Shown here: positions 5,025-63,642 of the stretch, piece after piece
How the letters are laid out: each line of letters begins with the position of its first letter
Numbering within the stretch: position 1 is the stretch's first letter
NCBI GenBank assembly: GCA_964035545.1
Contig: OZ037765.1
Coordinates: 30,131,504-30,195,503 of the forward strand
Direction of reading: 5' to 3'
Source of the DNA: Bugula neritina
Taxonomy: Eukaryota > Animalia > Bryozoa
DNA length: 64,000 nt
Position numbers and translations under genes: made by a program
The notes under the pieces: model-generated
Told to the model about the DNA's origin: nothing
The model's database searches: none
The model's input: the letters and a program-made list of their open reading frames with translations, nothing else

Positions 5025-6849
5025 TTTGAGCTTCTAAAAATAAACCATCTGGTCATTATAAACAATGTTAAAGGAACAACATTTAGAGCAATTAACAGAA
5101 TATTTCCTTTACAAGAATATGAACCTAAAACTACTACTGGAATACAATTTAAAATAATACAAATAACATATTCAATGATGGCAGAATTTTCCCTATATTT
5201 AATAGCCAACTACCAACAGCTACATTGTTTTTCTGAAAAGCAATTCATAAACTTCAATTGATAATATCAATTCTTACAAAAGTTGACTTAAATTCAATAA
5301 CTTACAAACCATGGACATAATTATTTGCACAGTTCAAGTTGTTTTTCTTTTTTATTAGGTGCAGGTTTTCTTGAAAAATCTTTTATACTTGGCTGCATTT
5401 ATTACATCTTTTAATTCCTTTGTTCAAATATTCAATATAATATGTTTAAAAAATCAACAACTGTCATCTAATGACTTATGGCTTATTTTTATACCAACGA
5501 CTTATCTACCAATTGATACTATAACCTATGCAGCTATCTATTTTAATGCTTTGTAAGTTGAATCATTGTTCATCAATATTTTAGACCGGGGTTGAGAACT
5601 AGCAGGTTAAAGTATGTACAGTAAAGGCTAAAATTATATTATAAAAATGACTAGGGTATATAATATTGTGAACTATAAAAAAACCTGCCAGAGTTTTTAT
5701 CAAGTAAGTTTTAGCATATAACAAGCAGCCTTATAACGCAATCCAGCAAATCTTGTTGAATGCTTACACTGTAAAAATAAATAACTTTTCATATGATATA
5801 ATTATAAGAATCACTTATGAAATTAGTGTTAGGAAATTATTACATAGCTTTAACTTGCAACTTTATGGCAAAAAATCATTAATATTTCTATGACAAATTA
5901 TAGCCATGATAATGATATATTACACAATGGCAATATGCCATTATCATTTATGTTGGTAAAGGAAATGCAATTGAATTTTCTGTTTAAATCAATGAAAAAC
6001 TCTTTGTTAAAATTTTTACTTATAATTAGCATCATCATCATGGTTCATAATATGATAATAATAATCAAGTTGTATGCAAAGATTCGAGATACATTTTAAT
6101 ATCAATTTGTGTACTGTTGGTTATATTTAATATTTACTATAGCTCTATAACTATTAGTACTAGTATTAATATACTATTATTAGTATTAGTATAAACTATA
6201 GTTATAAGTAATTACTAGCTATAAAGTTACTAGTCACTAGTTCAGTTCCTTATTAAGATTTAAGTTATAGCAATATTATTACAAGCCACTAATAGTAATA
6301 CACTAATAGTGATACTCATTAGTGATACTGACATACTGTAGAGTGGTAGTGCCAGTGGTAGTCGTAGTCGGTAGTGGTAGGCACTATTAGTAGTAGTACT
6401 GCTACTACTAGGTATAAATGTTTATAGTGATAAACTTTAAACATAATCACTTTATCATAATGATAATCACAATGATGATGAATATAAATACAATCACAAT
6501 AACCATCGGGTTATTCATATTAAACTTAAAGTGATAATGATAATATTAATCATAATTACAACAATTAAATTCAATATTAATAAAAATTGTTATAACAATA
6601 GCATTCATATTCATTAAATATCATTATGATTATGATATTGTTTCAATAAGTGAATAAGTCAATAACGAACTCAAAGACTACTATTAAATTTAACTAATAA
6701 ATTTAACATTAATGATTTAATTTTATGACAATGACTAAATGAGTAAAAGCAAAACTAAAACTAAAAAGTTAATAAAATCACTAAGTCTAACTTTAAGTTT
6801 AACTGAAATTCAAATTGTACTACAAATAATTGTAACCAATTTTATTTTA

Positions 6850-15150: not shown

Positions 15151-20017
<4,867 letters not shown>

Positions 20018-34000: not shown

Positions 34001-37000
34001 AACCTACCTGTCACCTGGTAGGCTCTCTGCTAGTTTTGAGTTGCTATACACGGAATTCTCCCTGCCTTATGGTGCTACTCGCACAGCTGGGCAGATGCTT
34101 GCCTTGTTGATGTTCAGCACATAAATTCTGCATTCTTGATTGTCACTTGGACAAGACTCAACTCTCCTCTTCACTGAAAATTAACTCCACTGACAGTTTT
34201 TGCTGGAAATTTAATGCTGTGTGGTTGTTATGCAGCAGCAAATGGCGCTATAACAAGTACCTGCCCCTCATTGCCAACATGTATATGGTAATTCAACTTA
34301 CAAAGCTTAAATGGAACATTTAATTGAAATAGGCGCAGTAATGGAAAAATTGAAAAAGCCTGTGTTCTAGATTATGAATATAGCAAAAGAAGTTTTGTTC
34401 TCGCTGGAATTATCACCCACGCCCCAAATCAAAATTTAATATGAAAATTAAAGAACTTAGGCTATCTCAATTTCTCCACTACTGCTCCTAAATGATTTAA
34501 TACAATAGAAAGTTTTAGCCTATGACTGTGATTAACACATAATATACAAAATGAAAATCTCATAATATGGTGTTTTCATATACTAGTATTGTACCAGCTG
34601 GATATGGTAATATGATTCTACAATTAGAAAGCACTACCAGTTTTAGCTTTATTTGCTACTCTTAATCTGAGCTGAGGTTCTGAGTTGATTGTCTTATTTA
34701 AGTCTTCAGAAAGCTGAAATGAAGTCTCAGTTTGAGTTGACTGATGGAGAGAATAACTTTGAAGCATTGAGAGGCTAATAGCTGTTGTAACTCCACAATA
34801 TACTGGAATACATTTAGTAGTTTGAGTTCTAAGAGTACCTGGATCTTAGGCTACCTGGATTCACATAACTCAGTCTAATTAGTGTTTTTCTAGGCTACTA
34901 GTTTTGCTAAAATTGGCATAAATCTGACCAGAATTTCGAAATTTTGTAAGCAATAACAGTTTGAAATAGTAGCTCTTCTAGGTGTGTTTGATGTGGTAGT
35001 GCTCAAGTATTACCCATTATGTAAATGGTTGTTAGTAAATATGCTAATGCCTACTAACTGGAGTACATGAGAAAGTTTAGTCTGTCAAAGGCCATTATAT
35101 GTATAATTCTTGCAGTATTTATGTTTTGGCATCCATTTTATTAGTTTCTCAAATGGCTATAAAATTGTCTATAAATTTGTGTCAAGTATGTTTTTTGCTT
35201 GTCATATTTAATATTTTTGCGGAATTTAAGTTATTTAAAAACATCTTGTAATTAATAAAGGTATGGTATAGCTACCAGAAATAGAGAGATGATGACGGCT
35301 ATATAGATATGTCATGTGTGTACTAACTGTACATTCTGAGTTTTACGTAGACCTTTGAGCCAACCGATAATAAAATGCCAGTCTTGGTATCTTCTTAGCC
35401 AAAACTTACTTCAAGACACTCTTCCCACTTTTAATTACTGTTCAAATTTCTCTATTTCCTTCTTCAAAGTTTTGCCAACTTCTTAAATATTTTAGAGAAA
35501 ATTCACTTAAGAGAAAGTAATTTCATTTCGGATTAACGTAAGCCAGAGTGGCAAAATTTGTCACGCTTAAGTTTTTTGTCAAGTGGGTGTTTGACACAGT
35601 TCTATCATCTGTTGAAGACCCAACTAACTGTTGCCGTAATTTTTTGTGTGATTTCTTAACTGTATTGTCTGACGATGCCAAGTCTGATGTATAACTAAGA
35701 CAGCTTATGATTAATTAAATCGTCATTTGCCATGCGTCTTGTTAGGGTGAAAGAACAACTACGTAACCCTTAAAGTGTCGAAAAAGTTTTATTTCTAAGA
35801 ATTTTTTTTAAAACTATAGATAGATCAATTGTTGGTCTGTGTAATTATATGCAAGAGAGTTTTAAGGTTTTCCACTGTTTAATTCAAAAGGTATATTTGT
35901 AATTAGGCATTATATTTTGCTTCATTAATCCCTTTTGGATAGCTTCTGAAGTATATTATTATATTTGCCTTAAACACCTGCATGAAAAAAATGTAATTTT
36001 AAATTACCTGCAGCTAAGACATAAATATTTTTCTAGGGCTTCGTTTGCCTGCCCACCCACGCTAATATTAGATGACCAGGTTTAAGTAGGTAATGGATTG
36101 CCACTAATGCTATATTTCATAATTATTGCAGTTCTTCATAAAGCTGCAATATCAAGCAAGACTTCTGAGTTCAGATAACAATCAGTTGTCTACTTTGTTA
36201 CCCACCCTTCTCTCCAGAGATGCTAGCTATCAGGTAACTCTACTATTTACTGCGTTCCAGTGAATTACATCACTTGGTGCGTGCTACACCTGTCTATGAA
36301 TTATCATGCGATTCAACCATAGTTCAACGCCCACTTTAAAATATGTTCGCCATATATATTATAGCTATATTTATATTATTGTTACAGTGTGGTAATATTT
36401 TTTCTATATAGTGATATCATATGCTTTGATAGATTTATTATGAGGTCCATGTACAAGTGTCGTACAGTTACAGGTGATTGCAGGTGCTGTTTTACATGTC
36501 ATATACTAGTTGTATATAATGGGAGAGATATTTAATGATGCTCTAAGTTGTCATGATACAACAATGCTAATTTTTGGGACAGTTACTGAATGCTAATGAG
36601 ATTAAACTCAAGGCGTTGTTCACCAGCATACTAGAATGTTGTACCTGTGTGTATATACTTGTACACTCGTAGCGTATAGAGAATGCTCTGGTAGGGTGTA
36701 GCGTTGTGGCAAGTTGAAAATTTCTCCGTTAGGTGTGCCTAAATATGACTTTTCCTGGTGGAGGTAGAAGAAATTAATATACTATGTGGGGTTTAAATAG
36801 CATTCACCACTAATTAGCAGCGTTTAAACCTTTAAATATTCATTAGCACTAGCAATGTAAGAAATTATAGTTCTTTAATGATTTTTTTTAATTGTGTTTA
36901 AAACCCCTTAATTAACCCTCTAAAGGGTGTTTTATAGGTTTTTAAGAAAGTTAATTGGTTTTAAGAGCAGTTTCTGTATTGATTACTACTATTAACATAA

Positions 37001-40000
37001 TATTTCTAATACTAATAGATTCTTCTCTTCATACAGACTATGTTAAGTCATAGTTCTACAGTCTCCTAGCACTTTTATATCATTGGAAAAGTTGAGACTT
37101 CCTAATTCTAGCCAACGGAACGGTTTTTGTACTAAAAACCAAAACATATTCTTCAATAGCAAAAGCTTCCTCAACAGGTGTTCTCCACGTTGAATAACTA
37201 TTTACCATCATCTAACATAAAATTTATTTTCTAGTGCACATGTCTGTATGCTAGATAGATTTACTGGGTAGAATCCCACTAGCCATTCCAGTGATATAAG
37301 AAAGTGTGAAGGAACTTAGAAGACCTTCAAGTATATTTATGTGAATTTAGTTTTAATTGGCTCTTGAAAATAAGAATGAAGATGATTTGTTAACGGTCCA
37401 TTTTTTTCTTTTTAATTATAAAGCATAGTTTTCTATGTAAACCTTATTTTACTAAGTTACGTTCATCTTAAGACTCTTGGAATACCACCAGTTGCATATT
37501 ATTTAACAATTTACACCCTCATAATCAGTCAACGTACTCTATGTGTTTTGTGCTGTGTCCACTACCAATACTACATGCACTATACACACTACATGCACTA
37601 CTACTGCGACATGCACTATACACACTCCATATACTGCATACACTGTATGCACTACACTACCACCACTACATGCACTACTACCACTGCATGCAATGCATGT
37701 ACTACATCACTACATGCACTACTACCACTGCATGCAATGCATGTACTACATCACTACATGCACTACTACCACTGCATGCAATGCATGTACTACATCACTA
37801 CATGCACTACTACCACTGCATGCAATGCATGTACTACATCACTACATGCACTACTACTACTACATGCACTACATACATACATACACACATACATACATTA
37901 CATACACACATACATACATTACATGCACCACTACCACTACATACACTGCCACGATTTGTTACAAACTCATCTCTGTATTTCCAGCTACCGTCCTCCATAG
38001 ATGTAGATGACGTAGAGGATCTGGAATGTACTCTGTTCAACACAAGCATAGCCAACATATCTTCACTAGAAGATGAAATGCTCAAGTCTCTCACACACCA
38101 CGTCACCACTGATTTGAAGGCTAAACTAAGAACTTATGCTGACAATTCACAAAGCATGTATGTGTTGGATATACTAGTTCTCTATACTATAACTCTATGT
38201 CGAAACCTTTATTCAGCTGAAACATTAAATTATAATTATTTCAATGTAAAATAAATCTTACTACTTGTTATATACATCACCACATGACTGATATTGAACC
38301 CTTTGTCATTTCACTGCTAAAATGTGTGTTATATCAAGATATTTTTAAATAATTCCATGCAGGACCAGTTTTCATCCAAACAAAGGTTCAACTTCGTGAA
38401 GAAATGTTGCTTTTTAATCTTGAAATGTTTTTATGAGTTCACATTTTTTTACATAAACACATTTATGTTAATTATGTGAATTAAACAACTGTTACTCATA
38501 AGTTTTGATGGTTATAAATAGAATAATCTAATCCTTGGGGAATGCAAGCTCTTATCTTATAATAATTTTGTTTTTATCAGCACCTGGGACAGTTTCCTTT
38601 GGTGGATCTAATAGCATTATTAATAGTTACTTATCTACAAAATGTGAGTTACAAAATCATACCATATTAGGAAACAAAATTAATAATCATTAAGTTGACT
38701 AATGAAATCAAATCACATCTGCAGAGTTTATTTTTATCAAGTGTTAACTGGACTGTAAATTGTTGCACTAATTGCCCGAAATTCATCTGGTGGCTCCAGT
38801 TACCAATTATCAAATTTTTTTAATAGTTGGTGGCACAACCCAAATTTTTAATGCTAGTTTTCAACGTTTAGCGCATAAAAGCTCACTCAAGTTTATAGTC
38901 ATCATCCCTGTGAGAACCCCTGATGGAAAGGTTTTTTGTTAAAGCGGGCTTAGGACTTATTCAGATGTGGCATAGGAGCAATTATGACTGGATGCTCTTT
39001 TTAACATCACCAATGGCCTTTGTCCAAGCTCGAACCCATGACCACGTGCTTACTAAGCAAATGCTCTAACCCCAGACCACGGCTGCTCTCTTTAGCACAT
39101 GAATGGTGTCTATTATAACACTGACCAAGTAATATCTCAGCTTATTTAAACAATGTTAACAGTTTAAAATAATTTCTTGTTCTATCTTTTTTCTGTCGTA
39201 GGTGGACAGCGTTGTCTCATCTCAAGCACAAGGAGGAGCAGCATATGGTCACTCTGTCAGCCACAGCTTGTGACTTCATCATCTACCTTGAAAGCAGTTT
39301 GGTTTTGGGTTTCGAGGCTCTTCAGCAGCAACTATTTACTCAATTCTGGCAGCAAGTAGTACAGGAGCTGGATAGGCTTATATTTCATTTGGTATGCATT
39401 ATAGTTCATCATAATATTCTATTCTATGTAGTAGATTATCATATTATATTCTGTGTAGTAGTTTGTTACATTATTCTACTATCGTTCACAGGTATAATGA
39501 TAAAATATTGTATAAATACTATTCTAAGTTGCTGAGATAGCAACCGTCTTCATTAAGTCACTTTCAGTCTCAAACTAATTATTCATGCAAGTTTTCGACA
39601 TTTACATGTTACCCCATTATACCTGTAGACAGACATGGGTAGGTGTAGTCATATATAATCTACTATTAGCATACTCTGTAGTGAAGTTGATGAATGCCCT
39701 TTGCTGAGGTTTTGTGGAAATTGTCACCTGAATGTTCAGTGTTGACTCAACATCTGCTCAATGATTCGCTGAAGGATTTTCCTACTTCCTCCTCATAACA
39801 GCTGATTGGGTTAATTTCCTGAGACATTAGATAATGCTTTGTACACTTTCTCTTGGAAACAGTGCAGGGGGGGGGGGACTACACAAATGTTTTGTTAGCC
39901 ACACCTACTACACTGTTCTATTGAAGTTTAGAATTGTGTTAAATAATGTTCATAGTTTATAAGATAAAATATTTCAGTCACTATTTTTACGTTTGGTAAA

Positions 40001-42257: not shown

Positions 42258-43370
42258 TGATTTAATAATGATGATTTAATTATAATTTAAATTTTTTCTC
42301 ATTTTATGTATTTCTTACTTGTTTTGACTATTGCTCTTTGTCTGCTATTTTTCTAATCAGAAAGTCAATATTATATATGTGCTTTAATTATAATTCTATG
42401 AATATGACTTTTGAATTAGTCCATAGTTGTGAGTTCAAAAAATAAAGATACGGTATGCTGCTTTTAACCAACAGGTAGAACCTTGCTTTATATAACCTAC
42501 ACGTACCACTATAATATAAAAAAATAGGTTTCTTTCTTGTATTATTTATGGAAATAAAATATAGTATGTAAAGCTTTTAGTAAATTGGTAGATTATTTGA
42601 ATCTTTTGATTATGGAAAGCAAAATTAAATCAAATTAGGGCGTGCACTTTTGGCTGTACATTTCAATATAAGTTACACTTGCATATTATATACAGTTTCT
42701 AAGAATTGAAATATTATAGATCGATTCTCACATAAATAATTCTAGCAGAGGTTTTGTGGTTCCTTAGTTAAGCCTGCATGTAATGCCATATACACTGCTT
42801 GTATACTGGTTACACAATCCGCAGTAGTTATTGAACTAAAATATTTTACTGTTTAGTAAAAGTAAATTGTCATTTCTCAGAATTAGGTAGTATAATTTTA
42901 TACTAATTTGACTAGAATTGAACATGTTGCAATATATGCTATGTAGCTCTTAAGCATCAACGCTAAATGAATGTTTAATGATTTTGTTTTTTACCAATTT
43001 GGCAATGACATGGTGCAACTCGACATTGATGGTTAGTCATGCTTTAAGTTCCTGTGTGAAATTCTTATACCGTCATAGCCAGCCTATATTTAGTCGGCTG
43101 GGGTATCTGCTCTCCGCGGTTCACTGGTCACCTCTCTGCTTCTGCTGAATAACAGCTCAGCTATTCGTGAATCAAGGTGATTATCTACCAGAACTGAACC
43201 TAGTTCTTTAGAAGCGTGTTTATGGTCAAAACCTGTACCACCACACGAATCATGTAAGACAACCACACTTCTGCTGATATCACCGATGGCTGTCCTTTAG
43301 CTGCAAGAAGTCACACTTTGGGAATGTGATTTAAAACTTTTTACCAGCTGAATCATTTTATTAAATGAGA

Positions 43371-43586
43371 GGGTGTTCGGTAAAATTGGCACAGGTAAAA
43401 ATGGCACAGGTAGTAATGGCAAAGTAGGTAAAAATGACACATTTTCAATATTAGGGTTTGAGTGTTTGGGATGGGGGGGTTTAGGTTTGGGAAAATTTAA
43501 CACCAGTGTGCCATTTTTACCTACTTCTCCTTTTGTGCCCCTTTTACCCCGTGCCCTTATTACCTGTGGCATTTTTACCTAAAATC
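43371..43586. mobile_element. Non-autonomous Mutator/MULE-like foldback element with 9-bp TSD
   Basis: Perfect TSD TAAATGAGA at 43362-43370 and 43587-43595; long imperfect TIRs built from 15-bp ggtaaaaatggcaca subrepeats. Confidence 0.9.
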
Positions 43587-47798: not shown

Positions 47799-50700
47799 AT
47801 GAGGGTCCTCTTGGGACTAATGGTAGCTACGCTGGCAGCAGCACAATGTAAGTAAAGTCAGCGTTATTTCTAAACTCTTTTATACATGTTTCCAACTGAA
47901 CTTACATTATATATACTGTAGAAGAGATTGCTTTTTGAGTTTTTGTTTTATATATTGGGCACACCCATGCATAATAAATAAACTCCCAAAATAAAGAGTT
48001 AAAGAATTTTAATGAAATTGACAAAAGTTATCACAAAGACATGCATGGCTGAAAATTGTAGGTTAAATTTGTAACTCATTTATTAAAACTGTATCCTGTA
48101 ACATAGACCCTGACCTACTGTTTGAATTATTCTGATCATCGGAGTAACTTTTATTTTTTATGTCATGCCAACACATAAAATATGTTTTGTTTTATTAAAG
48201 AATAAAATTTCACTTATCCGAGTTAATCACAATTCTGAAAATGGTAGTTACATTGTGGAACGTCATAATAAATCTTTTGTCTGACTGTTTTATTGACAGG
48301 TAGTTTTCCTAATCTATAAATAGACAGTTCCACAATATTTATTGAAGTTTTCTAGCAAACATATCTTATATTACCAAACCGTTAAGAGAAGTTTTTCTAA
48401 TGTTTCTATAAAATAATTACCCCCACTGGGACTCAAACCACAGACCTGGACCTTGCAAGCAGGCTTGCTAACTAATTACACCACAGGGACTCCCAGGTAA
48501 TCACAATGGTACATTTTCTAAGTTGAGCAATGCTTCTTTTGCAGCTACTGTATGGGAAATACCACTAGAAACCATATTCTCTGGAAACAACATAACAGCA
48601 AGATCAAATCCTTCAAAGTCAGCGGACAGGGCAGCATCTTATGTAGACTTTAATATCCAAGTCAAACCAGGAATATTACAGAGTTTCCAGTATTACATAT
48701 ACAATCCATATAACTACGCCAGATCTCAAAGAGTTTGGTTTCAAATATGGGAGATCAAAGAACAACTTTTCCACGGAGGTACCAACGCATTACTAAATAC
48801 TTCCTTGGAATTAATATACGAGACTTCAACCACCACTGGCACTGCTAATGGCGTTTACACGGTGAGTCATTTCTCTCACCATTCAGATGTTTGTCTAGTT
48901 TTAGCTTATGGTGTGAGGGAAACAAAAGTTTGTGAAAAGATTCATAAAACCAGATTCTTCAACTTATAGTGGTTGATAAACTCAAAGCAATGTGTATTTT
49001 TATTACAAATATATCATAATTTATGATATTGCATAATTACTGTATTTTATATACATATTCATTATCCTAGCACAGCAATATGTTGACTATTATGAACAGT
49101 TTTGTAGCTTAAAATCATAGCGAACTTCCTTTTAGGTGTTGGAGTTGTTTGAACATACAGTTTTTCAATTAAGTATGTTAAAAATGAATATTATAACTTA
49201 TTGAAAGATTTTTTGCCGTAAATTGCAGAAGATAATCTGAGGATAGGTAGTGCTAAGCTCACGGATCAGGTTTATAGCATTTATGATTCCCTTTAATCTC
49301 ATATCTTAGTGCCAGCAAATGGCTCCTTGCAGCCCTCCCGGCCTCAATTGATTTTATTTGTTAACCAACATCGTAAGCTAGGAATGGTGCTCTAGTGGCA
49401 AGATTAGCTCTAATAAATTTAAAATTATTTTCATACTTGCAGTAGATAAAGATTTGTATTTTATACTCTACTTTTATTTAATAGGTACCAGTGACCGATA
49501 GACCAGTTATTAAGAGAGGACAACTTCTAGGATTTGCTACTAGCAGCCGAACCATTCCATTCACATTTGACTATGCTAGTTCAGGAAAGAAGGTGGTGCC
49601 TATTGATGGCACTTCCCTGCCACAAGTTGGTGATAACAGAGCAGCCCTCGACAATGAAGGGGAGAGAATAGTCTATTCTATTGGAGCAGTCACTGATCCT
49701 AGTATGTTGTCTTCTCTTTTAAAAATTATCATTTTAAAAATAGGATTCTAAAAATTAGATCTAGATTTAAAAACCTCGATTTGCTGAGTAGTTGTAATTG
49801 GACAAGTATAGTAGGTAATAGGTTGCTATACTTTTGGGTTGAAGTTGTTTTATCTAAAAAAAATTCTGGCCACAAAAGCATACGAAACAAATGAGCACAC
49901 AACTCCGAATTCACTTGTTTAAATTCGCTTCAGACTTTGTTGCATTTCATAAAAAAACAAACAGCTTTTTACTTTCTGTTTTAAAAATGCAACTTTGAGA
50001 TGTAAAAATCTAAGAAGGATGTTAAGGATAATAATATGTTGTAAATTGGGTTGAATATCTATTGCTTATACTGAACATTCCCTGATTTTGGAATGACCTA
50101 TATAATTTAGGATAGGTATAATGGTGGAAGGCCATAAATTAAAGTGATAATATATTATGTCCTGTGCATGCTCATAGTCTACCATTTAATTGTCTACTGT
50201 TCTTTCTACTGTAGTTGACCCTGAAGACCCAGAATACAGCACCCTTCCACCCTGTGATCCTAGTGGCAATGGCAATGGCTATGGCTATGGATATGGATAT
50301 GCATGCAGTAAGCTCCCTCTTTATTATATTATATTTATTTTAGAACTAAAGCTTTAAAAAGAAAACAATTACTAACACAAGTTAGTAATATGAGTTTTCA
50401 CTATTAATCTCCTAAGGAACCTGTTGTTGCAGATAACATGGGTGCCACTGGTGCAACTGGTGCATCTGGAGCCCCTGGTGAAGATGGTGCGCCTGGAGCT
50501 CCTGGTGTCCAGGGAGACAGAGGAGAGACTGGAATGAAAGGAGATGATGGGGAAGACGGACAAAATGGAGAGACAGGTGCAACTGGTGCTCCAGGCGCTT
50601 CAGGAGCACCCGGTCTACCCGGAGAGTCTGGGAGAGATGGTGTAGACGGCCAGTCTGGGCAGCCAGGTACAGAAAGCCTTTATGGCGAAAAGAAAATACT

Positions 50701-53700
50701 AGGAAATTCACTGTTGACTGAACAAAGCTATGTAACTTATTGACTATAATATTATTATGAATATTTCAGGTGCACCTGGAAATCCTGGAGCTAAGGGAGA
50801 GCAGGGCAACCCAGGGGCTGATGGATTTGATGGAAAGGATGGTGCTAAGGGAGAACGTGGTGAACAAGGAAGCTCGGGAGTACCTGGTAACGATGGAAAT
50901 CCTGGTAGAGATGGCCAACCTGGTCAAGATGGCCGAGATGGCAATGATGGTAGAGACGGTCAACCTGGTGAAACTGGAGCTCCTGGAGAACGTGGAGCAC
51001 CTGGTAGCTCCGGGCGACCTGGAGAACGTGGCCAAGATGGTAATCCTGGAAGAGATGGAGAGAGAGGTGAACCTGGTCAACCTGGTTCTCCAGGACAAGA
51101 TGGGTTGCCCGGTAATGATGGTGCTAACGGGAGTCCCGGTGCAAGCGGAGCACCAGGCTTAGATGGTGAAAGGGGAGAAAAAGGAGATCAAGGTAACCCA
51201 GGCTCTCCTGGCTCACCGGGTTTAGATGGCAAAGATGGCTTAGATGGGCGAGATGGGCAGGATGGAGCGCCAGGTGAACGTGGAGAACCTGGAGCTCCTG
51301 GTCAATCAGGTACTCAAGGTCTTCCAGGAGATAGAGGATCAGATGGCGCACCAGGAGAGAGAGGTCAAGATGGTAGAGATGGAGTTCCCGGTTTAAACGG
51401 TCAACCAGGAGAAACTGGAGCTCGAGGAGAACCTGGTCAACCTGGACAACCAGGTAGCAAAGGAGACAGAGGTGAGCCAGGAACACCTGGAAGAGATGCA
51501 GCTGATGGAAGAGATGGACTACCTGGTAGACCAGGAGATCGAGGAGAACCCGGAACCCCTGGACGTGATGGAGTTGATGGACAAGATGGCAGAGATGGTA
51601 TTGATGGTAAAGATGGACAGGATGGTCTAAAGGGAGATCGTGGAGCTCCTGGAGAGCCAGGTCAATCAGGAAGAGATGGCATTCCAGGACAAAGTGGAGC
51701 TGATGGAATTCCAGGTCAGCCTGGTGAAAGAGGTGAAGCAGGGCAACCCGGTCAAACAGGTGCACCTGGATCTGATGGACAACCAGGAAATGATGGAACC
51801 GATGGAAGAGATGGTAACCCTGGTGAGCCTGGTCGAGATGGGGACAGAGGAGAGCCTGGACAACCTGGACAGCGTGGTGCAGATGGTAGTGATGGAAAAG
51901 ATGGACTTCCAGGTAGAGACGGAGCACCAGGTGATCGAGGTAGCCCAGGACAAAGTGGTGCTCCAGGTGAAAGAGGATCAGATGGGGCACCTGGCTTGCC
52001 AGGCACTCCGGGTGAGAGAGGTAACGATGGGCGACCCGGTGTTGATGGAAATACAGGAGCTCCAGGTCAGCCAGGACAACGCGGTGAATCTGGCACTCCT
52101 GGTTCAGATGGAAATGATGGAACACCAGGTGTTGATGGTCAACCTGGACAGCCAGGTGAAAGAGGGCAACCTGGTCAAGATGGTCGCCCTGGTGAACGGG
52201 GAGACGCTGGAGCTCCAGGACAAGATGGTAATCCTGGAAGAGATGGTGATAGAGGACAAGATGGTGCACCGGGTAATCCTGGTAGAGATGGACAAGATGG
52301 TAGACCTGGAGATCGAGGTGCTGATGGTCAACCTGGCGCACCAGGTTTTGATGGCAGAGATGGGGCTAAAGGAGACAGGGGTGCTCCTGGAGAGCCTGGA
52401 CAAGATGGTAGAGATGGTACTAATGGTCAAGATGGAAGAGATGGTATTGATGGAGCACCAGGTCTGCAAGGTGCCCAAGGAGCTCCTGGAACCCCAGGTG
52501 CTGATGGTCAAAAGGGGGCTGCAGGTGAACCAGGAAGAGATGGTTTGCCAGGAGAAAGGGGAGAGCCTGGTCAATCAGGAGCTCCTGGCTCAGATGGAAG
52601 AGATGGAGCCACCGGACAGCCTGGAGCACCAGGCCTTCCTGGAAAAGACGCATCACCAGGATTGAATGGTGAAAATGGTTTACCTGGTGAAAGAGGAGAA
52701 ACAGGAGCACCTGGAGCTCCAGGTCAAGATGGTGCACCAGGAGACTCTGGAAGAGATGGTGCTGATGGACGAGATGGAGCTCCAGGCGAACGCGGTTCTC
52801 CTGGGCTTCCAGGTGCTGATGGTCAAGATGGAGCACCAGGGTTGCGAGGTAAATATTAGTATTATAAATAGCTGCTGTCAATCACCCACTTTATGTAAAC
52901 ATGAAGTTGAAATAGTTCCTTCAAGTCTTAAAAACATAGCTGCTTAATGATAATGTTTTTTATTGGAGGCAGTTGTAAGCATCTCCATTCTTTATGAGTT
53001 GCTTGTTACTAGGGCAACAATACACTGGAGATTTTCATTTGTCTGATGACTAATTATTTATATCTCAGGTGACACTGGAGCACCGGGAACTCGCGGTCAA
53101 GATGGAAGACCTGGAAACGACGGAAGACCAGGCAATGATGGCAGACCTGGAAATCCAGGTGAGCCAGGACAAGATGGTATCCCAGGAAGAGATGGAAAAG
53201 ATGGTGAACCAGGAGCAGATGGCACTCCTGGACAATCCGGATCACCAGGACAACCTGGTCAAAGAGGTGAACAAGGAGCTCCCGGACAAAGCGGAGCTCC
53301 AGGTCAAGATGGTAATCCTGGAAGAGATGGTGATAGAGGACAAGATGGTGCACCGGGTAATCCTGGTAGAGACGGACAAGATGGTAGACCTGGAGATCGA
53401 GGTTCTGATGGTCAACCTGGCGCACCAGGCTTAGATGGCAGTGATGGTGCTAAAGGAGACAGAGGTGCTCCTGGAGAACCTGGACAAGACGGAAGGGATG
53501 GTGCTAATGGTCAAGATGGTAGAGATGGTATTGATGGGTTACCAGGAGCTGATGGAACTGATGGGCGTGATGGTGACAGAGGTAAAATATCATTCTAATT
53601 AGTGCATGAACATAATATATTGTATGTGTTTTAGCAAATTGAGTGCATTGCTTATGATTTCCGAAATGCTACCACAAATTAAAGTGGCGGTAAAGCATTT

Positions 53701-56700
53701 TTAAATAAAACATAACTGTTTATCTACAATGATTTAAATCTTCAAAGTTCAAAATTATACTAAAACAGAGTTCACTAACATCCTTGTCTTCACTGCCTTT
53801 CTTGCTATCATAGGTGCCCCAGGACAACCTGGCCAACGAGGTGAAGCAGGGACTCCTGGATTAGATGGCAGACCCGGAGATCGAGGTCTACCTGGTGCAG
53901 ACGGCCAAGATGGGCGACCAGGTAATCCAGGTACACCGGGTGCTGATGGAGAAAATGGACAAGATGGTGCTCCAGGTTTACCTGGTGCTACTGGCTTAAG
54001 AGGAGAACCAGGAACTCCCGGAGAAAGAGGACAGGACGGACAACCAGGAAATGATGGTCTTCCAGGTCAAGATGGCTCACCTGGTGCACCTGGCTTAAAT
54101 GGAGCACCAGGTGAACGAGGAGATTCTGGAGCTCCAGGAAGAGATGGTAATCCTGGAAGAGATGGTGATAGAGGACAAGATGGTGCACCGGGTAATCCTG
54201 GTAGAGATGGACAAGATGGAAGACCTGGAGATCGAGGTGCTGATGGTCAACCTGGAGCACCAGGCTTAGATGGTAGTGATGGAGCTAAAGGAGACAGAGG
54301 TGCTCCTGGAGAACCTGGACAAGATGGTAGAGATGGACAAGATGGAGCAGATGGTTTGCCAGGATCAGATGGACTTCCCGGGCAGAATGGTTTACCAGGT
54401 TAGTTTTTTTCTACTTTTTGCATTCCAAACAGTGTGACACTGTAAACGTGCTACTGAAGACAATTTCGAACTTATAAAAAATGTTTTAGAAGTATATTTT
54501 ATTTTTTCTAGGTGAGCGTGGCTCTGATGGCTTGCCAGGAGCACCTGGTGAACGTGGACAACCGGGGTCTCCCGGTCAACAAGGCCAGCCAGGAGAGAGA
54601 GGCCAGGCTGGAGCTCCAGGACAAGACGGTAATCCTGGAAGAGATGGTGACAGAGGACAAGATGGTGCACCGGGTAACCCTGGAAGAGACGGACAAGATG
54701 GAAGACCTGGAGATCGAGGTGCTGATGGTCAACCTGGCACACCAGGCTTAGATGGCAGTGATGGTGCTCCAGGAGAAAGAGGTGCTCCTGGAGAACCTGG
54801 ACAAGATGGTATAGATGGCACTAATGGCCAAGATGGTAAAGATGGTAATGATGGTGCTCCTGGATTAGATGGTGAACCAGGTTAGCTCAGTTTCATCGTC
54901 TTCGGTTTTCAGTTAGAAAATGTTCCATATATTTGGGTGCTGAAAATAATTGCTATGTACTGCCTTTGTAATTTTTAAAATATTATTTGCTTTGTTACTT
55001 TGGAATTCATTTTAAAATTTTATTCTAGGTGCTTCCGGTGCCCCAGGACGTGATGGAAATGATGGGAGAGATGGACAACCTGGTTTGCGTGGTGAGCCAG
55101 GTAGTCCTGGAAGAGATGGAGATCGAGGTGCTGATGGAGCTCCTGGACTTAATGGGCAAGATGGAAGAGATGGAGCTCCAGGTCAGCCTGGTAATGATGG
55201 TCAGCCTGGGAACCCTGGCCAAGATGGTGCTCCAGGACAGAATGGCCAAGATGGACAACCGGGTATTCCTGGACAAGACGGACAAAGAGGTGCTGATGGG
55301 CAGAAAGGTGACAGAGGACAGGATGGTCAAGATGGAAGAGATGGAAATCCCGGAGCACCAGGTGATCGAGGAGCACCAGGAGCCCCAGGTGAGCCTGGAC
55401 AAAGAGGAGAGGCTGGGGCACCAGGTGACAGGGGGGCAACTGGTCAACCAGGAAATCCTGGACAAGATGGCAGAGATGGATTAAATGGTGCAGATGGAAG
55501 AGATGGCACAGATGGTCAGCCTGGAAGAGATGGAGAAAAGGGTGCTGCCGGTGAATCTGGCCGAGATGGTTCCCCTGGAGTAGATGGGCAACCAGGGCAA
55601 GCTGGAGCTGATGGGCTGCCTGGTGCTCCTGGTTTAAGGGGAGATACTGGAGCACCTGGTCAAAGAGGAGAACCAGGAAGAGATGGACAAAATGGCCAAG
55701 ATGGAGTCGATGGTCGTCCCGGAGACCGAGGACAAGATGGACAGCCAGGTCAACCTGGTCAGGATGGATTACCTGGTCAAGATGGACAACCTGGTGAACC
55801 TGGTTTAGATGGAAGAAACGGAGAAGATGGTCGTCCAGGTAGAAATGGAGAGAGGGGAGCACCAGGCTCGCCTGGTGAGCCAGGAACTGATGGCTTGCCT
55901 GGCCAAACAGGTTTGCCAGGTGCACGTGGTGCTAAGGGCGAAAGTGGAGTTCAGGGATATGATGGAGCTAGAGGAGCAACAGGAGTAGCTGGAAGACCTG
56001 GTGAAACAGGACAGCCAGGTGCACCCGGTTCTCCTGGAGAAAGAGGTCTTCCTGGTCAAGATGGCATAGATGGGCGTCCTGGTGAAAATGGACAAGATGG
56101 GCAACCTGGTGAACGTGGACAACCCGGAGATCAAGGATTGCAAGGAGAACCTGGCCAAGCTGGTGAACCTGGTATACAAGGTGCACCTGGTGTCCCAGGA
56201 GAGCGTGGTGCTGACGGACAAGCTGGAGCTACTGGTGCCCCAGGAGCACCAGGCACACCAGGCGAAAGAGGTGAAAATGGTCGAGATGGTGTAGATGGGC
56301 AACCAGGTATTGATGGACTGCCAGGTGCTCAAGGAGAAAGTGGCTTACCAGGTAGAGATGGTCAGGATGGTGCTGATGGAGCACCTGGGTTGCCTGGACA
56401 AGACGGTAATGATGGAGCACCAGGCTTGCGAGGTGACTCAGGCTCTCCTGGAACTCCTGGACTTCCTGGTGCTAAAGGAGACCCTGGAAGAGATGGTATA
56501 GATGGTCGTGATGGTCAAGATGGACGACCAGGACAACCCGGTAATGATGGACTTCCAGGCAATGACGGCCGGGATGGTGTTGATGGACAGCCTGGAGCTA
56601 TTGGTGTACCTGGTCAAGATGGAAACGATGGAAGGGATGGTGCCCCTGGTGAACGGGGTGCTACTGGTGTAGCAGGCATCCCAGGAGTTCCTGGTAAGTC

Positions 56701-59700
56701 TTAGTGAAATTTGTCACTTGAGAGTACAAACCGATGACTCAACTTTCAAAAAATTAATCTATTAACAATAACTATATATTTGTTGGCAAATGAAACAAAT
56801 TGAAGTTAAATTAATTTTTTTTTACAAATATATTTACACCTGTGTGCATTGCTGATTTACACTTATGTTGCAACAATTTTATAAAACAGTTTTTTATAAT
56901 GCTTATATTTTATAGGAAACGATGGAGCTCCAGGTGAACAGGGAGCTAGTGGACGCGTTGGAGCAACTGGACTGCCTGGCAGAGATGGTGAAAGAGGTCA
57001 ACCTGGAGCACCTGGTAATGATGGTCTTCCTGGAAATGACGGTCAACCTGGGCTGCAAGGTCAACCAGGTGATCGTGGTCAACCTGGTACACCTGGGCAA
57101 GATGGTCGACCCGGTAATGATGGCTTACCAGGTGATCGTGGACTTCAAGGTGCACAAGGAGCTCCTGGAGCTCCCGGACAAAATGGTTTGGACGGTAAAG
57201 ATGGAGTTGATGGTCTAAGAGGCGAAAAAGGAGAGTCTGGAGTCGCTGGGTTTGATGGTGCAACTGGAGCAACTGGTGCGCCAGGAGCACCTGGAAATGA
57301 TGGAGAAAGAGGATTGCCCGGTGAAAGCGGAATAAAAGGATCAGCTGGTATTGATGGCCTCCCTGGAAACGATGGACTTCCTGGAAGAGATGGTCAGCCA
57401 GGTCAAAGAGGTCAACCTGGTTCTCGAGGAGAAGTTGGTGCTCCTGGAATTGATGGAAGGGATGGAATAGATGGCATTCCAGGAGAAACAGGTAGACCAG
57501 GAAGAAATGGTAATAAAGGAGAGAAAGGAGATCAAGGAGAACGAGGCCAGGCTGGTGAAATTGGACTAACTGGTTCTACTGGTAGAGTAGGTGCTACTGG
57601 TAGTGCTGGAGTTCCCGGAGTAGATGGTACTAATGGACTACCAGGTCAAGATGGCCAGAGAGGTCAAAAAGGAGAAAGTGGTGCACAAGGTTTTGATGGT
57701 GCAACTGGATCCACAGGACAACGTGGAGCACCAGGTTTAAATGGAGCCGATGGTCTTCCAGGTGCAACTGGTTTACCTGGTCAAGATGGACAAACTGGAC
57801 AACAGGGCTTCAAGGGAGAGAAAGGAGCAAATGGTGTTGATGGAAAAGATGGTGCACCAGGACTTGTTGGTAGTACTGGACGACCAGGAGAACCAGGACG
57901 ACAAGGAGAGCAAGGTTTCCCCGGTGAAATTGGATTGACAGGAGCTACTGGTATACCTGGTGCAACTGGACAACCTGGCAATGATGGTTTACCTGGTCAA
58001 ACAGGTCAGCCAGGAGAACGAGGTGAAACAGGTTTAGATGGAGCTGCTGGTGCAACAGGAGCTACTGGTCAAGCAGGAATTCCAGGCTTAGATGGTGCCA
58101 CTGGTGAAACTGGGCAACCTGGTGAAATTGGAGCCACCGGCTTTAACGGGCAAAAAGGAGAAAGTGGTGCAGTTGGAACCGATGGGGCAACTGGCTCAAC
58201 TGGTTCAACAGGAAGAGTGGGTGCAACTGGTATACAAGGAAATGATGGTGACAAAGGTCAAAAAGGAGAAAGTGGTGCAGTTGGTTTCAACGGAGCTACA
58301 GGAGCAACTGGTCTACAAGGTGTACCAGGTATACCTGGACAAACTGGTTTACCCGGAGAACAGGGTTTCAAGGGCCAAAAAGGAGACAGCGGAGCCGCTG
58401 GAGATGTTGGTTCAACCGGCTCTACTGGTGTTGCTGGTATTCAGGGTGTTCCTGGTGAAACTGGACAAGTTGGTGCTACAGGTATCCAAGGTCTTCAGGG
58501 GCTAAAAGGAGAATCAGGTGCTGCTGGTCAAAATGGAGCTACAGGCGCTACTGGATTAACTGGTCAACCAGGTATTCAAGGTATTCCTGGAGAAACAGGA
58601 TTTAAGGGTCAGAAAGGAGAAAGTGGCGCAGTAGGATTCAATGGTGCAACTGGTGCCACTGGTGCACCTGGTCAACAAGGGCTTGACGGAGCTCAAGGTG
58701 AAAAAGGTAGCAAAGGAGAAAGTGGAATAGTTGGACTCAACGGAGCAACTGGATCCACAGGTCAGGAAGGTGTGCCTGGTTTACAAGGTGAACCCGGAAT
58801 TCAAGGTGTGAAAGGACAGAAAGGAGAAAGTGGAATTCTCGGAGAGGCTGGAGCAACAGGGGCAACTGGTATTGCTGGTACAAAGGGACTTAAAGGACAG
58901 AAGGGTGATGGAGGAGCAGATGGTAAAGATGGTAGAATTGGAGCCACTGGTCGAACTGGAAGTCAGGGAGACCAAGGAATCAAAGGAGCTGCTGGTGTTG
59001 ATGGTCGCAAAGGTGATATTGGTGCTAAAGGTATGAAAGGTGAATCAGGAATTCAAGGAACTAACGGAGCAACTGGAGCTACAGGTGTTGCTGGTGTAAC
59101 TGGTGCTGTGGGTGCCACCGGATTTAAGGGACAAAAGGGTGACAGTGGAGCACAAGGTTTTGATGGAGCCACTGGTTCCACTGGTCTACAAGGTGTCCCT
59201 GGTTTAGATGGTAATGATGGATTACCTGGTGTGAAGGGAGCCGTCGGTGAGCCTGGTCTCAGAGGGCTCAAAGGAGAATCTGGAGCAGCTGGAACTAGAG
59301 GTTCAACTGGTGCAACTGGCCGTATTGGAGAACCTGGTTTCAAAGGAGATCGTGGACAAGATGGAAATGATGGTTTTCCTGGAGCTCCTGGAGAACCTGG
59401 CATTAAAGGTCAAAAGGGAGATTTTGGTTTGCCAGGTGGGTACTTGTTCAAGATAATGATAATATTAAAATGAGTCATTTTATTTCGGAATTGTACAAAT
59501 AAAATAATATTTTGTGCTTTAGTGTATCTTGTGGTTTAGTGTATTCAGAAAAATGAGGTTTCCACTTCTACTAATAACTAAGAAATAACCAAAAATTTTG
59601 CTTTAGGTCTAAAGGGAACGAGTGGATCAAAAGGTGAGCCAGGTTTACCAGGCAGAGAGGGCTCAACTGGTTTTACTGGAGAAAAGGGAGCCGTAGGTGA

Positions 59701-62274
59701 TCCAGGATTACCAGGTACTACTGGTATTAAGGGTCAGCCTGGTCTGAAAGGCGAGAGAGGATTTACAGGAGCTGCTGGTCTGAATGGAGTAGATGGTTTG
59801 CCTGGATCTAAAGGAGATACTGGTGATGATGGCCAGCCAGGACTTAAAGGAGACCGTGGTGCTTCTGGAATACGAGGATTCAAGGGTGAGAAAGGAGAAA
59901 GTGCATCAGCTGGAGACAGAGGTGCAACTGGATCTAAGGGTGCACCTGGAGAATCTGGAGCACCTGGTTTGCCTGGTGAAGATGGTTTAGATGGCGAAAA
60001 TGGATTGCCCGGTGACTCAGGTATAAAGGGTGAAAAGGGAGACATTGGTTTACCAGGGTCGAATGGTGCAACTGGCCTACAAGGTTTGCCAGGTGATGCT
60101 GGTGTAAAAGGAGAGCCTGGACAAACTGGTACTAAAGGAGAGCAAGGTCTTCGTGGATTTGATGGTGCAGCAGCATCTAAAGGAGAAATAGGTGCAACAG
60201 GTGTGGCTGGAGTAGCAGGTGCTAAGGGAGACCCTGGATTGATTGGTGAACCAGGAGCTCCAGGACCTAAGGGAGAAGCTGGAGATGTTGGATTACAAGG
60301 AGAAAAAGGAATGGCAGGCGTAGCAGGTACACCAGGTGAACGTGGATTCAATGGAACTAGTGGTCTTCCAGGTGTCAAAGGAGATCCAGGAATTAAGGGT
60401 GAAAAGGGAGATATTGGTGAAATTGGTTCTACCGGGCTAAAGGGAGAAGCTGGTGCTAAAGGAGAAGCTGGTATCAAGGGAGAAATAGGGTTAGAAGGAC
60501 CTAAAGGTGCAGATGGCTTGAAAGGAGAAAAGGGAGCAGCTGGCAAAGACGGAAAAGATGCCGACAATGAAAATGAATGTATGACAAACAATGGCGGATG
60601 TTCAGATGTGTGCATCAACACTTTAGGAGGCTTCTACTGTGCTTGCAGTAAGGGATATAAGCTGAACAGCCCATCAACACCACAGTGTGACGGTAAGAGT
60701 TGATATCTTTTGTAACTCATCGGCACTTTATAGTTGTATTACTTAATTGTAAAAAGCAGTAGGTAAAACATTCAGTATATGCACATTGTATTATATAGCA
60801 TTCTTTTACTTGTTTTAGCGGGAACTACATTCTGTGAACATTATTACTACTACGGAACACTTTGCTACTGCAAGAAGAATGATAATGTCGTTCTCATCAA
60901 TGGAACTACTTGTTCTGACCTTGATGAATGTCAAGTCAACAATGGCGGCTGCGAGCATCACTGTTCCAACAGTCCCGGTAGCTACAGCTGCTCGTGTGAT
61001 AATGGATATAAGCTGCAGAATGATAACCATGGCTGTGAAGATGTAGATGAATGCGCTGACAGATCTATCAATGACGGATGCGCCGATGGTTGCATCAACA
61101 CTGTCGGAGGTTACTACTGCTCATGTCCATCCAACAGAGAACTGGCTCCTAATGCTGTAACAATTTATCAAACAGAAATACCTGCATCGAGTTGTCAAGA
61201 CTATCCAGTTCATATCGACAAACAGCTATGTCAAAACGCAAACACCAACTTTGGTTTGCAGACGTGCACTTGCGTATCTAGTATTACAGGGCAGCAAACA
61301 CCTGTGGCCGACACTGGAGCATGTTTAGGTTCGTGTCTTCTAACTAATTTTGCTATAGAGTAGCTAAAAATTGGCAGATGGTTGGTTACATTGGCTTTAA
61401 ATACTAATTTAGTAAGATAATCAAAAGTTTTACTATTATAATATTGTGCTTCATGTAGTGTAGGCAGTGGGGGTAGCAAAACGTGAAATAAGAATTTTGT
61501 GAATGAACATTTTTAACCATATTTCTTTTTTTATTAGATGTAAACTTCAATATTTTCAAAAGTCAATGTTTTTGCGACAGCTTTTGCAAAATTTTACTGT
61601 TTTCATTGCAGCGAGAAACGTTCATTGTGAGTGGACAACCAACTTCCTCTACGTCTGCTACTGTTACGTTACTGATAAGGGTTCAGTCAGGGCCATCACT
61701 CTAAATGGCACCCAGTGTGGCTTGAAAGATGAATGTAGAGAGAATAATGGTGGTTGTGCTCATATTTGTACCGATACAACCGACGGATTTGAATGTTCCT
61801 GTTTCGCTCCACCTGACAAGTTCACTGAAGAAGTGTGGACACTAAGTGCCAACAAGTACGACTGCATTGATGTTGATGAGTGTGGAAATGTAGCCTTTGT
61901 TGACCTGGTTTGTCCATCTCCAGCGAAATGTGTCAACACCCCCGGCTTCTACAAGTGCATTAGGAACACGGCCATCAGTAAATCTGGATTGGTTGAAGCA
62001 GGTAAGAGCATTCGAAAGGAAGACTTTGAAGTTGGCGATTTATTTGAATCAGATTTTAGTCATCTTTCTTTTATATTCTGTTGCTAAATTCTCAATGTCT
62101 CTTGTGTTTGTAGCATCCACTTCGGGAGTGACTGTGTCCACATTGACGGGCTTTGTCTGGGCAGGAATAGCCACTGTAGTGGTTGTTATTTTGGTGGCGG
62201 TCCTGGTAGTCAGGACCAAATTGCACAATGCTGCCACATCTGACATTGAGTCATCTACTGCTCTTAGCAGCTGA
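47799..62274 (+). CDS. Giant collagen-like protein (~3,595 aa): signal peptide, N-terminal globular domain, 990 Gly-X-Y triplets, Ca-binding EGF repeats, C-terminal transmembrane helix
   Basis: 15 phase-consistent GT-AG exons: 47799-47847 ([16 protein letters not shown]), 48545-48861, 49485-49701, 50215-50307, 50433-50666, 50770-52848, 53069-53581, 53814-54398, 54512-54880, 55029-56693, 56916-59435, 59607-60692, 60819-61328, 61612-62001, 62114-62274 (10,788 nt). cbEGF motifs DLDEC..NNGGC and DVDEC; TM segment [21 protein letters not shown] followed by RTK. Confidence 0.93.
48421..48492 (-). mobile_element. tRNA-like SINE head or tRNA pseudogene fragment
   Basis: Minus strand gtccctgtggtgtaattagttagcaagcctgcttgcaaggtccaggtctgtggtttgagtcccagtgggg: decayed A box and B box (GGTTTGAGTCCC). 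Confidence 0.55.
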
Positions 62275-62982
62275 GTTTTTATTCAATTTTTTCACCAGGA
62301 ATAAATTGCTCAATCATATCAATTTTATATTTTATTTATATGTGTGGAGTGGGCATTGGATTTATAAACACATGATCAATAATGTATCAATATGTTTGGA
62401 CACGGAAGTCCTAAACTGATAATTTGCTTTTACTCAGAGCTCTAAAACTTGTGACAAGCTATCTCTAATAGTGGTATATCACACACGAACATAGCTTTTA
62501 GACTTAGTTCTTTATAGAGTGCTACAAATTTAGCACTTAATATGTATATACTTTCCATTTAATAATAAACTGTGAAAACCCAACATACTGTACATTGCTG
62601 ATACTCAACATATAATAGCAAATTTCTCAGGAAATATTACAATTTTGACTTCTTAAATGTTTCACCGCAACATTGCACAGGCTATATGATACGAATTGCA
62701 AATTAAAACTATTCAACTAATAACTACAAACCAAAAACTGCTAAGATGAACATGTAGCATCCACACAATTAATATTAAGCTGCAGCCACTTATTGCAAGT
62801 TTAGCATATAACTAAATTCACTATACCAATTGTTTAATGTGTGAATAATGTGTATTTAAATAATTTAAAAAGTGAATGTCAGAGTATTATGATGAAAAGA
62901 GAGAAAATATTTACAAATGTTACACGAATGCTTATAAAAAGAAAAAATAAGTAGAAGGAATATCCAAGAATGATCAGGTGGG

Positions 62983-63642
62983 TCACACCACAGTTTCCTG
63001 TTTTCTAGTAACAGTTGGTTCAATTCCTAGACATGTTTCTACATCGTTACTAGAATCTGGAAGGATAGTTTCGGAGTTGTCTGCTACAGATTCAATTGGC
63101 TGAGTCTTTTCCATCTGCGAAGCACTTTGGCTGACTGCATTTTGAATACAGCTTAGCCACTGCCTCTTGTCATGTTCATCTCTGGCGTATAAAGTGTGAG
63201 GATGGCCGTTGGCTCGCGAAAATACTCGAAAAGCGCATTTATCTGCAATAAAAAGGAAATTACATAAGACACAGCAATATGATGTATGATCAAACTTATT
63301 GGTAAATTATGATTTACACTTTACCCTAGAGAAATTATTTATTGCAAAACTAGAAATATATAAGAAAGGTGGCACAATAGAATTAACATTTTGATAACCA
63401 AAAATTGAGAAATAAAAGACATGAGTGAATAAAACCGTAACTCAAAGGGACTTACCATGAGATGTATGACGAAGAACTTTACTTTTAAAGGATCCCTTCT
63501 TGTTTTCAGTCTCCGAGAGATCAATGAGTTCCAGTTCGGAGAGAGGAATTGGGTCTTTGACTATCTGGTAACTCAGCTTATTATTCCTTGTAGCAGTTCG
63601 AGTTACAACCATAACTTTGTCAAAGAGCACGACATGCAACTT
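62983..63642 (-). CDS. NET1: NET1/ARHGEF3-family RhoGEF, last two exons (PH domain and tail); gene starts beyond the window
   Basis: Exons 63642-63456 (KLHVVLFDKVMVVTR...YQIVKDPIPLSELELIDL) and 63242-62983 (FRVF...HTLYARDEHDKRQWLSCIQNA...KQETVV*) match the ARHGEF3/NET1 PH domain; the protein ends in a PDZ-binding motif. Confidence 0.85.

Follow-up and report, generated by a model that had tools for sequence, protein, structure and literature searches.

A predicted type I membrane procollagen with a 990-triplet helix in the bryozoan Bugula neritina

Known collagens and the design of the Bugula gene

In fibrillar collagens, a COLFI propeptide accompanies a helix about 338 triplets long, and long fibril-type chains rely on a soluble C-propeptide. 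To our knowledge, the animal transmembrane collagens described are type II. We examined a gene of another design in a 64,000-nucleotide (nt) stretch of the B. neritina genome (assembly GCA_964035545.1, contig OZ037765.1, positions 30,131,504 to 30,195,503, forward strand), hereafter called the window, whose own numbering is used below. Its predicted product joins a signal peptide, a head domain, 990 Gly-X-Y triplets, EGF modules, and a single C-terminal membrane helix. Like a fibrillar procollagen, it has one long helix between N-terminal globular and C-terminal Cys-rich parts, with helix length kept between paralogues. However, the chain is nearly three times as long as that of tendon collagen, and it carries EGF modules and a membrane helix rather than COLFI. 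Streptococcal Scl1 and Scl2 also place a head on a collagen stalk with an anchor at the C end; these proteins are bacterial, cell-wall anchored, and far shorter, and the likeness is an analogy of layout only, unrelated in sequence.

Membrane-associated collagens whose triple helices are interrupted (MACITs; XIII, XXIII, XXV, and Caenorhabditis elegans COL-99) are type II proteins with an N-terminal cytosolic part and three short interrupted helices, and they are shed at furin sites (PMC4678570). The window protein would likewise be made as a membrane protein whose ectodomain could be released, whereas it has a signal peptide in place of an N-terminal cytosolic or transmembrane part, a C-terminal anchor, no furin site, and one long helix broken by four single Gly-to-Ala changes. 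The EGF-collagens of the lophophorate Lingula anatina number 17 genes, with tandem paralogues as in Bugula, and four of the products occur in the shell proteome (774-1,548 amino acids (aa), basic, with signal peptide); some are also found in pearl oyster (Luo et al. 2015, PMC4595640). The window gene has the features of this group, namely a helix with EGF/EGF_CA/FXa_inhibition modules, a signal peptide, and no COLFI. Compared by description rather than sequence, it differs in that no membrane anchor or head is reported for the Lingula proteins, while the window chain is 3,595 aa long, acidic, and equipped with a transmembrane helix.

Annelid cuticle collagens are marked by very long helices and by Y positions rich in Thr (PMC11766948). 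Giant members are known from Alvinella, Paralvinella, Eisenia, and Riftia, and annelid predictions reach 7,719-8,859 aa in a study whose text gives lengths and Pro usage, not end domains (PMC12403961). A very long, near-unbroken helix with globular ends is common to these proteins (PMC12403961, PMC11766948) and to the window gene and its relatives, with 990 triplets here, about 1,290 in one paralogue, and about 1,725 in a distant homologue. The frequency of Pro at X positions is 0.33-0.40 in the alvinellids and earthworm versus 0.002 in the window gene. A first-pass annotation of the window had called the collagen giant; among spiralians its length is not exceptional, given the longer annelid predictions. 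It had also proposed a poorly described class; in the open literature searched, which leaves out most subscription journals, no type I membrane collagen of such a layout turned up, although the pairing of EGF modules with collagen is already described in Lingula. The architecture is apparently undescribed, yet built from known parts and not of record length.

Gene structure and transcript evidence

Using six-frame translation and splice-site inspection, we delimited a 15-exon gene on the + strand, from the ATG at 47799 to the stop codon at 62272-62274. All 14 introns are GT-AG, all but one are in phase 1, and joining the exons leaves an open frame as far as the stop. The features are as follows.

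47799..47847, + strand: exon 1, start codon and signal peptide (16 aa), then a phase-1 intron; a near-identical signal-peptide exon occurs in homologous locus L010
48545..48861, + strand: exon 2, first part of the head domain, without Pfam match, homologues found
49485..49701, + strand: exon 3, second part of the head domain
50215..50307, + strand: exon 4, acidic and Pro-containing linker with two Cys and a Gly-Tyr run right before the helix
50433..50666, + strand: exon 5, helix starts at 50441, 25 triplets
50770..52848, + strand: exon 6, 231 triplets, two Gly-to-Ala changes (51498, 52650)
53069..53581, + strand: exon 7, 57 triplets
53814..54398, + strand: exon 8, 65 triplets
54512..54880, + strand: exon 9, 41 triplets
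55029..56693, + strand: exon 10, 185 triplets, 3' junction seen in spliced contigs
56916..59435, + strand: exon 11, 280 triplets, spliced contigs
59607..60692, + strand: exon 12, final 106 triplets (Gly-to-Ala at 59903 and 60173, helix end 60559) and first EGF module, spliced contigs
60819..61328, + strand: exon 13, Cys modules including two EGF_CA/FXa_inhibition-type repeats, spliced contigs
61612..62001, + strand: exon 14, two more EGF-like modules and start of the juxtamembrane stalk, spliced contigs
62114..62274, + strand: exon 15, stalk end, transmembrane helix, cytoplasmic tail, and stop, spliced contigs
62146..62211, + strand: single predicted transmembrane helix, from hydropathy, with equivalents in both paralogues and the distant homologue
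62242..62250, + strand: Asp-Ile-Glu in the cytoplasmic tail, a di-acidic motif resembling an endoplasmic reticulum (ER) export signal
62300..62305, + strand: AATAAA, candidate polyadenylation signal, from sequence only

The earlier model of a single 15-exon gene stands, with its exon-2 acceptor moved. The most probable start of exon 2 is 48545 and not 48497, the alternative in-frame acceptor, since the chosen AG lies 8 nt 5' of a conserved Trp codon, a spacing common to the window gene, both paralogues, and three foreign loci; in three further loci the spacing is 5 nt. With this acceptor the predicted protein has 3,595 aa. The joined model was used for counting only, and database searches were run exon by exon, so that full-length annotated relatives could escape them.

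To follow splicing, contigs from four studies, taken as RNA by an automated guess, were aligned to window 56500-62400. Introns 10-14 (222, 171, 126, 283, and 112 nt) are skipped at their predicted ends in contigs of all four studies, and contig depth is zero in a bin inside intron 10. Overlapping contigs connect collagen exon 11 to exons 12, 13, 14, and the transmembrane exon 15. The samples diverge from the window by about 2%, and the sole indels listed fall in intron 13, none in an exon. These data show that the gene is expressed, with collagen exons spliced to EGF exons and these to the transmembrane exon. The inclusion of the transmembrane exon is thereby established as first annotated, and the unity of the locus is borne out for its 3' half; introns 1-9 rest on splice signals, the open frame, and conservation in paralogues and homologues.

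The helix and its relatives

The helix spans 50441..60559 on the + strand. Our counts reproduce the 990 in-register triplets first reported, together with their ends and their partition over exons 5-12 (25/231/57/65/41/185/280/106), and recomputing at 0.286 nm per residue again gives a length of about 850 nm. Gly comes first in 986 triplets and Ala in the other four (triplets 107, 235, 918, and 948, at 51498, 52650, 59903, and 60173); the helix is in register but imperfect. Pro occupies 314 Y positions and two X positions, and Asp 241 Y positions (24% of Y), with a helix net charge of about -178. The chain also contains five RGD and 14 G-x-P-G-E-R motifs, to which we gave no weight as evidence of integrin binding. 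Window 50270-50305 encodes a Gly-Tyr run directly before the helix, a possible site of Tyr cross-linking. A GYGY motif is reported in Ala-rich shell proteins of Lingula (PMC4595640 supplement), and at G000:C2:33.08 Mb a collagen is flanked by Gly-Tyr stretches.

The head exons match exactly three loci in the genome: the window gene, paralogue A, and paralogue B. About 35 kb downstream, on the opposite strand, paralogue A repeats the window gene's exon plan and, like it, has an EGF block, a membrane helix, and a short tail, as well as a Cys/Tyr linker. Its exons 6-10 hold 231, 57, 65, 41, and 185 triplets, exactly as in the window gene. X/Y identity between the two is 25-57% in register and 17-20% in shifted registers, and third codon positions of Gly agree at 32-48%, which is near random. 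Paralogue A has more interruptions in exons 11-12 than the window gene, and its last two, 72 and 42 triplets from the C end, fall at the sites of the window gene's last two Gly-to-Ala changes. Fixed exon lengths and shared interruption sites despite low X/Y identity argue that helix length and register have been under long-term selection in both genes. A heterotrimer could explain the fixed lengths, as could selection that removes indels from triple helices of every kind. Paralogue B, which shares the design, lies on contig C2; its roughly 1,290 triplets carry Thr at 52% and Pro at 1% of Y positions, recalling Riftia cuticle collagen.

Within the window gene, an internal repeat of 24-34 triplets occurs in four copies at 52164..54870 on the + strand (near 52164-52469, 53284-53553, 54101-54334, and 54565-54870) with 85-93% DNA identity. 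In paralogue A, a separate block, lying at the ends of exons 7-9, has been homogenised. Because repeats are homogenised within each gene while exon lengths stay fixed between genes, the pattern suggests gene conversion inside each of them. Such repeats, in a locus where spliced contigs confirm the 3' introns 10-14 only, could also mean that separate genes or a mis-assembled repeat had been taken for one gene. This is extremely improbable: identity among the copies is no more than 85-93%, the exon lengths recur in paralogue A, exons 10-15 are connected by spliced contigs, and the linkage of head to collagen recurs in foreign loci L020, L036, L041, and L045.

Searches with the head domain return single-exon fragments only. 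In a tree of these sequences, the three Bugula genes each cluster with fragments of other samples; support is starred for the group around paralogue B, as it is for the pairing of paralogue A with its closest relative. A long branch, likewise starred, splits the Bugula-containing set from a distant set. L020 and L041 encode a head followed by collagen in the styles of the window gene and paralogue B, respectively; L020, an orthologue, also keeps the exon-4 linker and the Asp-rich helix. In a distant animal (ENA ERZ25333528), the head exon is 19% identical, and the locus has a likely signal-peptide exon and a head split over two exons at unchanged intron positions. A helix of about 1,725 triplets across 18 exons (about 1.5 µm), EGF modules, a single membrane helix, and a short tail with DIE complete it. 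An orthologue of this gene in ENA ERZ21784934 has at least 884 triplets within the 10 kb read and adjoins an OATP gene. The presence of three paralogues here and of the same architecture in a distant animal places the window gene in what appears to be an old family. Neither the paralogues nor the distant counterpart had figured in the first-pass annotation. In both distant hosts (L036 and L045), the collagen gene stands head to head with the OATP gene, and the two OATPs are 49% identical. An OATP-like open reading frame (ORF) lies about 7.5 kb beyond paralogue A in Bugula, without a match to the OATP fragments of L036 and L045.

A high density of Asp raises the possibility that the protein belongs to the organic matrix for zooid-wall calcification, its helix templating calcium carbonate. 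The Asp content and the net charge, both shared with L020, are consistent with this, as is the presence of EGF-collagens in the Lingula shell proteome (PMC4595640). However, paralogue A and the distant homologue are neutral (net charge +7 each), and the Lingula shell collagens are basic (pI 9.4-11.3) and only 774-1,548 aa long. An unrelated giant collagen on contig C4 is equally Asp-rich, which may reflect a lineage-wide triplet habit. We consider a calcification role distinctly unlikely.

The C4 collagens are two single-exon ORFs of 3,466 and 2,994 aa, with 1,127 and 964 unbroken triplets (G000:C4:17046243-17078834, L027-L030). They open with a Cys-x-Cys-Pro motif and have neither head nor EGF parts, and the second is close to the window gene in length and in its Asp/Pro-at-Y style. 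Homology of their helices to that of the window gene was rejected, as no register rises above background and no end parts are shared; they belong to another family.

The membrane end, the head, and a proposed role

EGF_CA/FXa_inhibition matches exceed Pfam cut-offs in exons 12, 13, and 14, and in exon 12 they occur together with the Pfam Collagen match. The EGF modules start a few residues past the last triplet. Altogether 40 Cys, in EGF_CA/FXa_inhibition-type and shorter modules, precede a Ser/Thr/Gly-rich stalk of about 25 residues. A single strongly hydrophobic stretch of 19 residues lies near the C end (Kyte-Doolittle mean 3.04), the runner-up being the N-terminal signal peptide (1.48). 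With an N-terminal signal peptide and a C-terminal anchor, the protein is predicted to be a type I membrane protein. No COLFI match was found by Pfam in exons 12-15, and a search for collagen-EGF junction proteins returned nothing, the homologous-protein search being sensitive only to proteins of similar length. The topology, the missing COLFI, the signal peptide, the EGF repeats, and the lone hydrophobic helix all agree with the first-pass annotation, except that the tail comprises 20 rather than 21 aa by the boundary used. The tail motif, D-[IL]-[ED], recurs in all four complete tails compared (window gene, both paralogues, and distant homologue). DXE is described as an ER-export signal in VSV-G (PMC7073182), and we infer the same function here. 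A furin site (R-x-[KR]-R) occurs nowhere in the whole chain; furin-mediated release was rejected for this reason, and release, if any, would therefore need another protease.

The head domain gave no Pfam family, no solved-structure match, and no ESM Atlas match in the exon-by-exon searches. Modelled by itself, exon 2 (pLDDT 70) gives a beta-rich structure whose weak fold matches are mostly galactose-binding-type jelly rolls (Z at most 4.1, TM-score at most 0.44), a hint rather than a finding. At distant locus L044 (10001-13724), in a microsatellite-rich animal genome, the ORFs suggest a gene in which a Thr-rich stalk and a membrane helix carry the same head, collagen being absent, so the head would be a mobile surface module.

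Our preferred reading, held with moderate confidence, is that the gene encodes a type I membrane procollagen in which the EGF/membrane end substitutes for the C-propeptide, and that the product is a structural fibre, about 0.85 µm long, of the epidermal covering. In the ER membrane, the transmembrane and EGF ends would bring three chains together and, in the C-propeptide's place, set the register; Y-position Pro would be 4-hydroxylated, and the helix would zip from the membrane end toward the head. Apart from the membrane end, no C-terminal nucleation site is evident, because COLFI is missing and the last triplet is followed within a few residues by EGF modules. Bulleid and colleagues are said to have found in 1997 that a transmembrane domain can stand in for the procollagen C-propeptide in engineered chains. 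The di-acidic motif of the tail may aid COPII export, and paralogue A may be a partner chain in a heterotrimer. At the surface, the protein would form a rod of about 0.85 µm with the globular head at its far tip, a structural fibre in an extracellular covering made by the epidermis (cuticle or ectocyst), tethered first and possibly cut loose later at the unstructured stalk. We favour the epidermal covering because very long helices and Thr-rich Y positions typify annelid cuticle collagens (PMC11766948).

Several points weigh against this proposal. The role is read from gene and contig sequence, with the annelid giants compared by description; assembled contigs prove single junctions rather than one full-length molecule, and they cover introns 10-14. 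Conservation of exon length is also expected of homotrimers, and shedding finds no support in a chain without a furin site. Moreover, passages of a bryozoan body-wall paper assign collagen to the basal matrix without applying the term collagenous to the cuticle (PMC9303787). That description, together with the production of most planarian collagens by muscle (PMC6453901), would suit a basal-matrix collagen of the tentacle tube, tendons, or funiculus, made by muscle or coelomic cells with the anchor as a folding aid only. In contrast, the chain has no COLFI, NC1, or other hallmark domain, and micrometre-long helices are reported from cuticles (PMC11766948), which makes a basal-matrix role very unlikely.

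The missing furin site speaks for a permanent membrane-bound filament that anchors epidermal or tendon cells to skeleton or cuticle, similar to collagen XVII in opposite topology, with the head binding carbohydrate or matrix at a fixed distance. Membrane helix and tail are kept in all four complete genes, L044 shows the same head-on-stalk design, and the jelly-roll resemblance would suit a carbohydrate-binding tip. However, the 20-aa tail has no other recognisable binding motif, the fold matches, obtained with half a domain, score lower than the level at which the tool is trusted, and helix length in the family ranges from about 990 to 1,725 triplets; we regard such an anchor as rather unlikely. 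The window gene and its paralogues are candidate genes for the bryozoan cuticle or skeletal matrix, which is molecularly little known. It is possible, though doubtful, that type I membrane procollagens with EGF and transmembrane parts replacing the C-propeptide form a spiralian-wide class that includes the annelid cuticle collagen genes. If true, this would reveal a natural route by which helices measuring 0.85-2.4 µm are folded and exported from a membrane anchor with its own ER-export signal. With a C-terminal anchor and helices of 990-1,725 triplets, the family is a natural test case for how triple helices a micrometre long find their register, fold, and leave the ER. For work on helix stability, the scarcity of Pro at X positions and the replacement of Pro by Thr in one paralogue make it useful.

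Other features of the window are ordinary. By Pfam, the neighbouring genes include PHTF1/2, DCAF12, RINT1/TIP1 exons, and a RhoGEF-type PH domain (4386-5033, - strand; 19544-20017, - strand; 24226-39532, + strand; 62986-63306, - strand). A short ORF at 43300-43578 (- strand) has five Gly-X-Y triplets on a 15-bp tandem repeat and is probably due to chance. Elsewhere in the assembly, G000:C5:7.024-7.030 Mb (L032-L033) holds a collagen of about 450 triplets that has a furin-like site and, in its main exon, Lys at 60% of Y positions. On the mitochondrial contig C321 (15,248 bp, 37.7% A), the order of the protein-coding genes and of most tRNAs agrees with that published for B. neritina (PMC2678162, Table 1), and we accordingly regard the animal as a member of the B. 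neritina complex. A near-complete cox1 copy at G000:C6:11174072-11175412, on a chromosome-scale contig, is a nuclear mitochondrial insert, and further cox1 genes on C17 (without TGA), C73, and C214 point to contigs of other organisms in the assembly.

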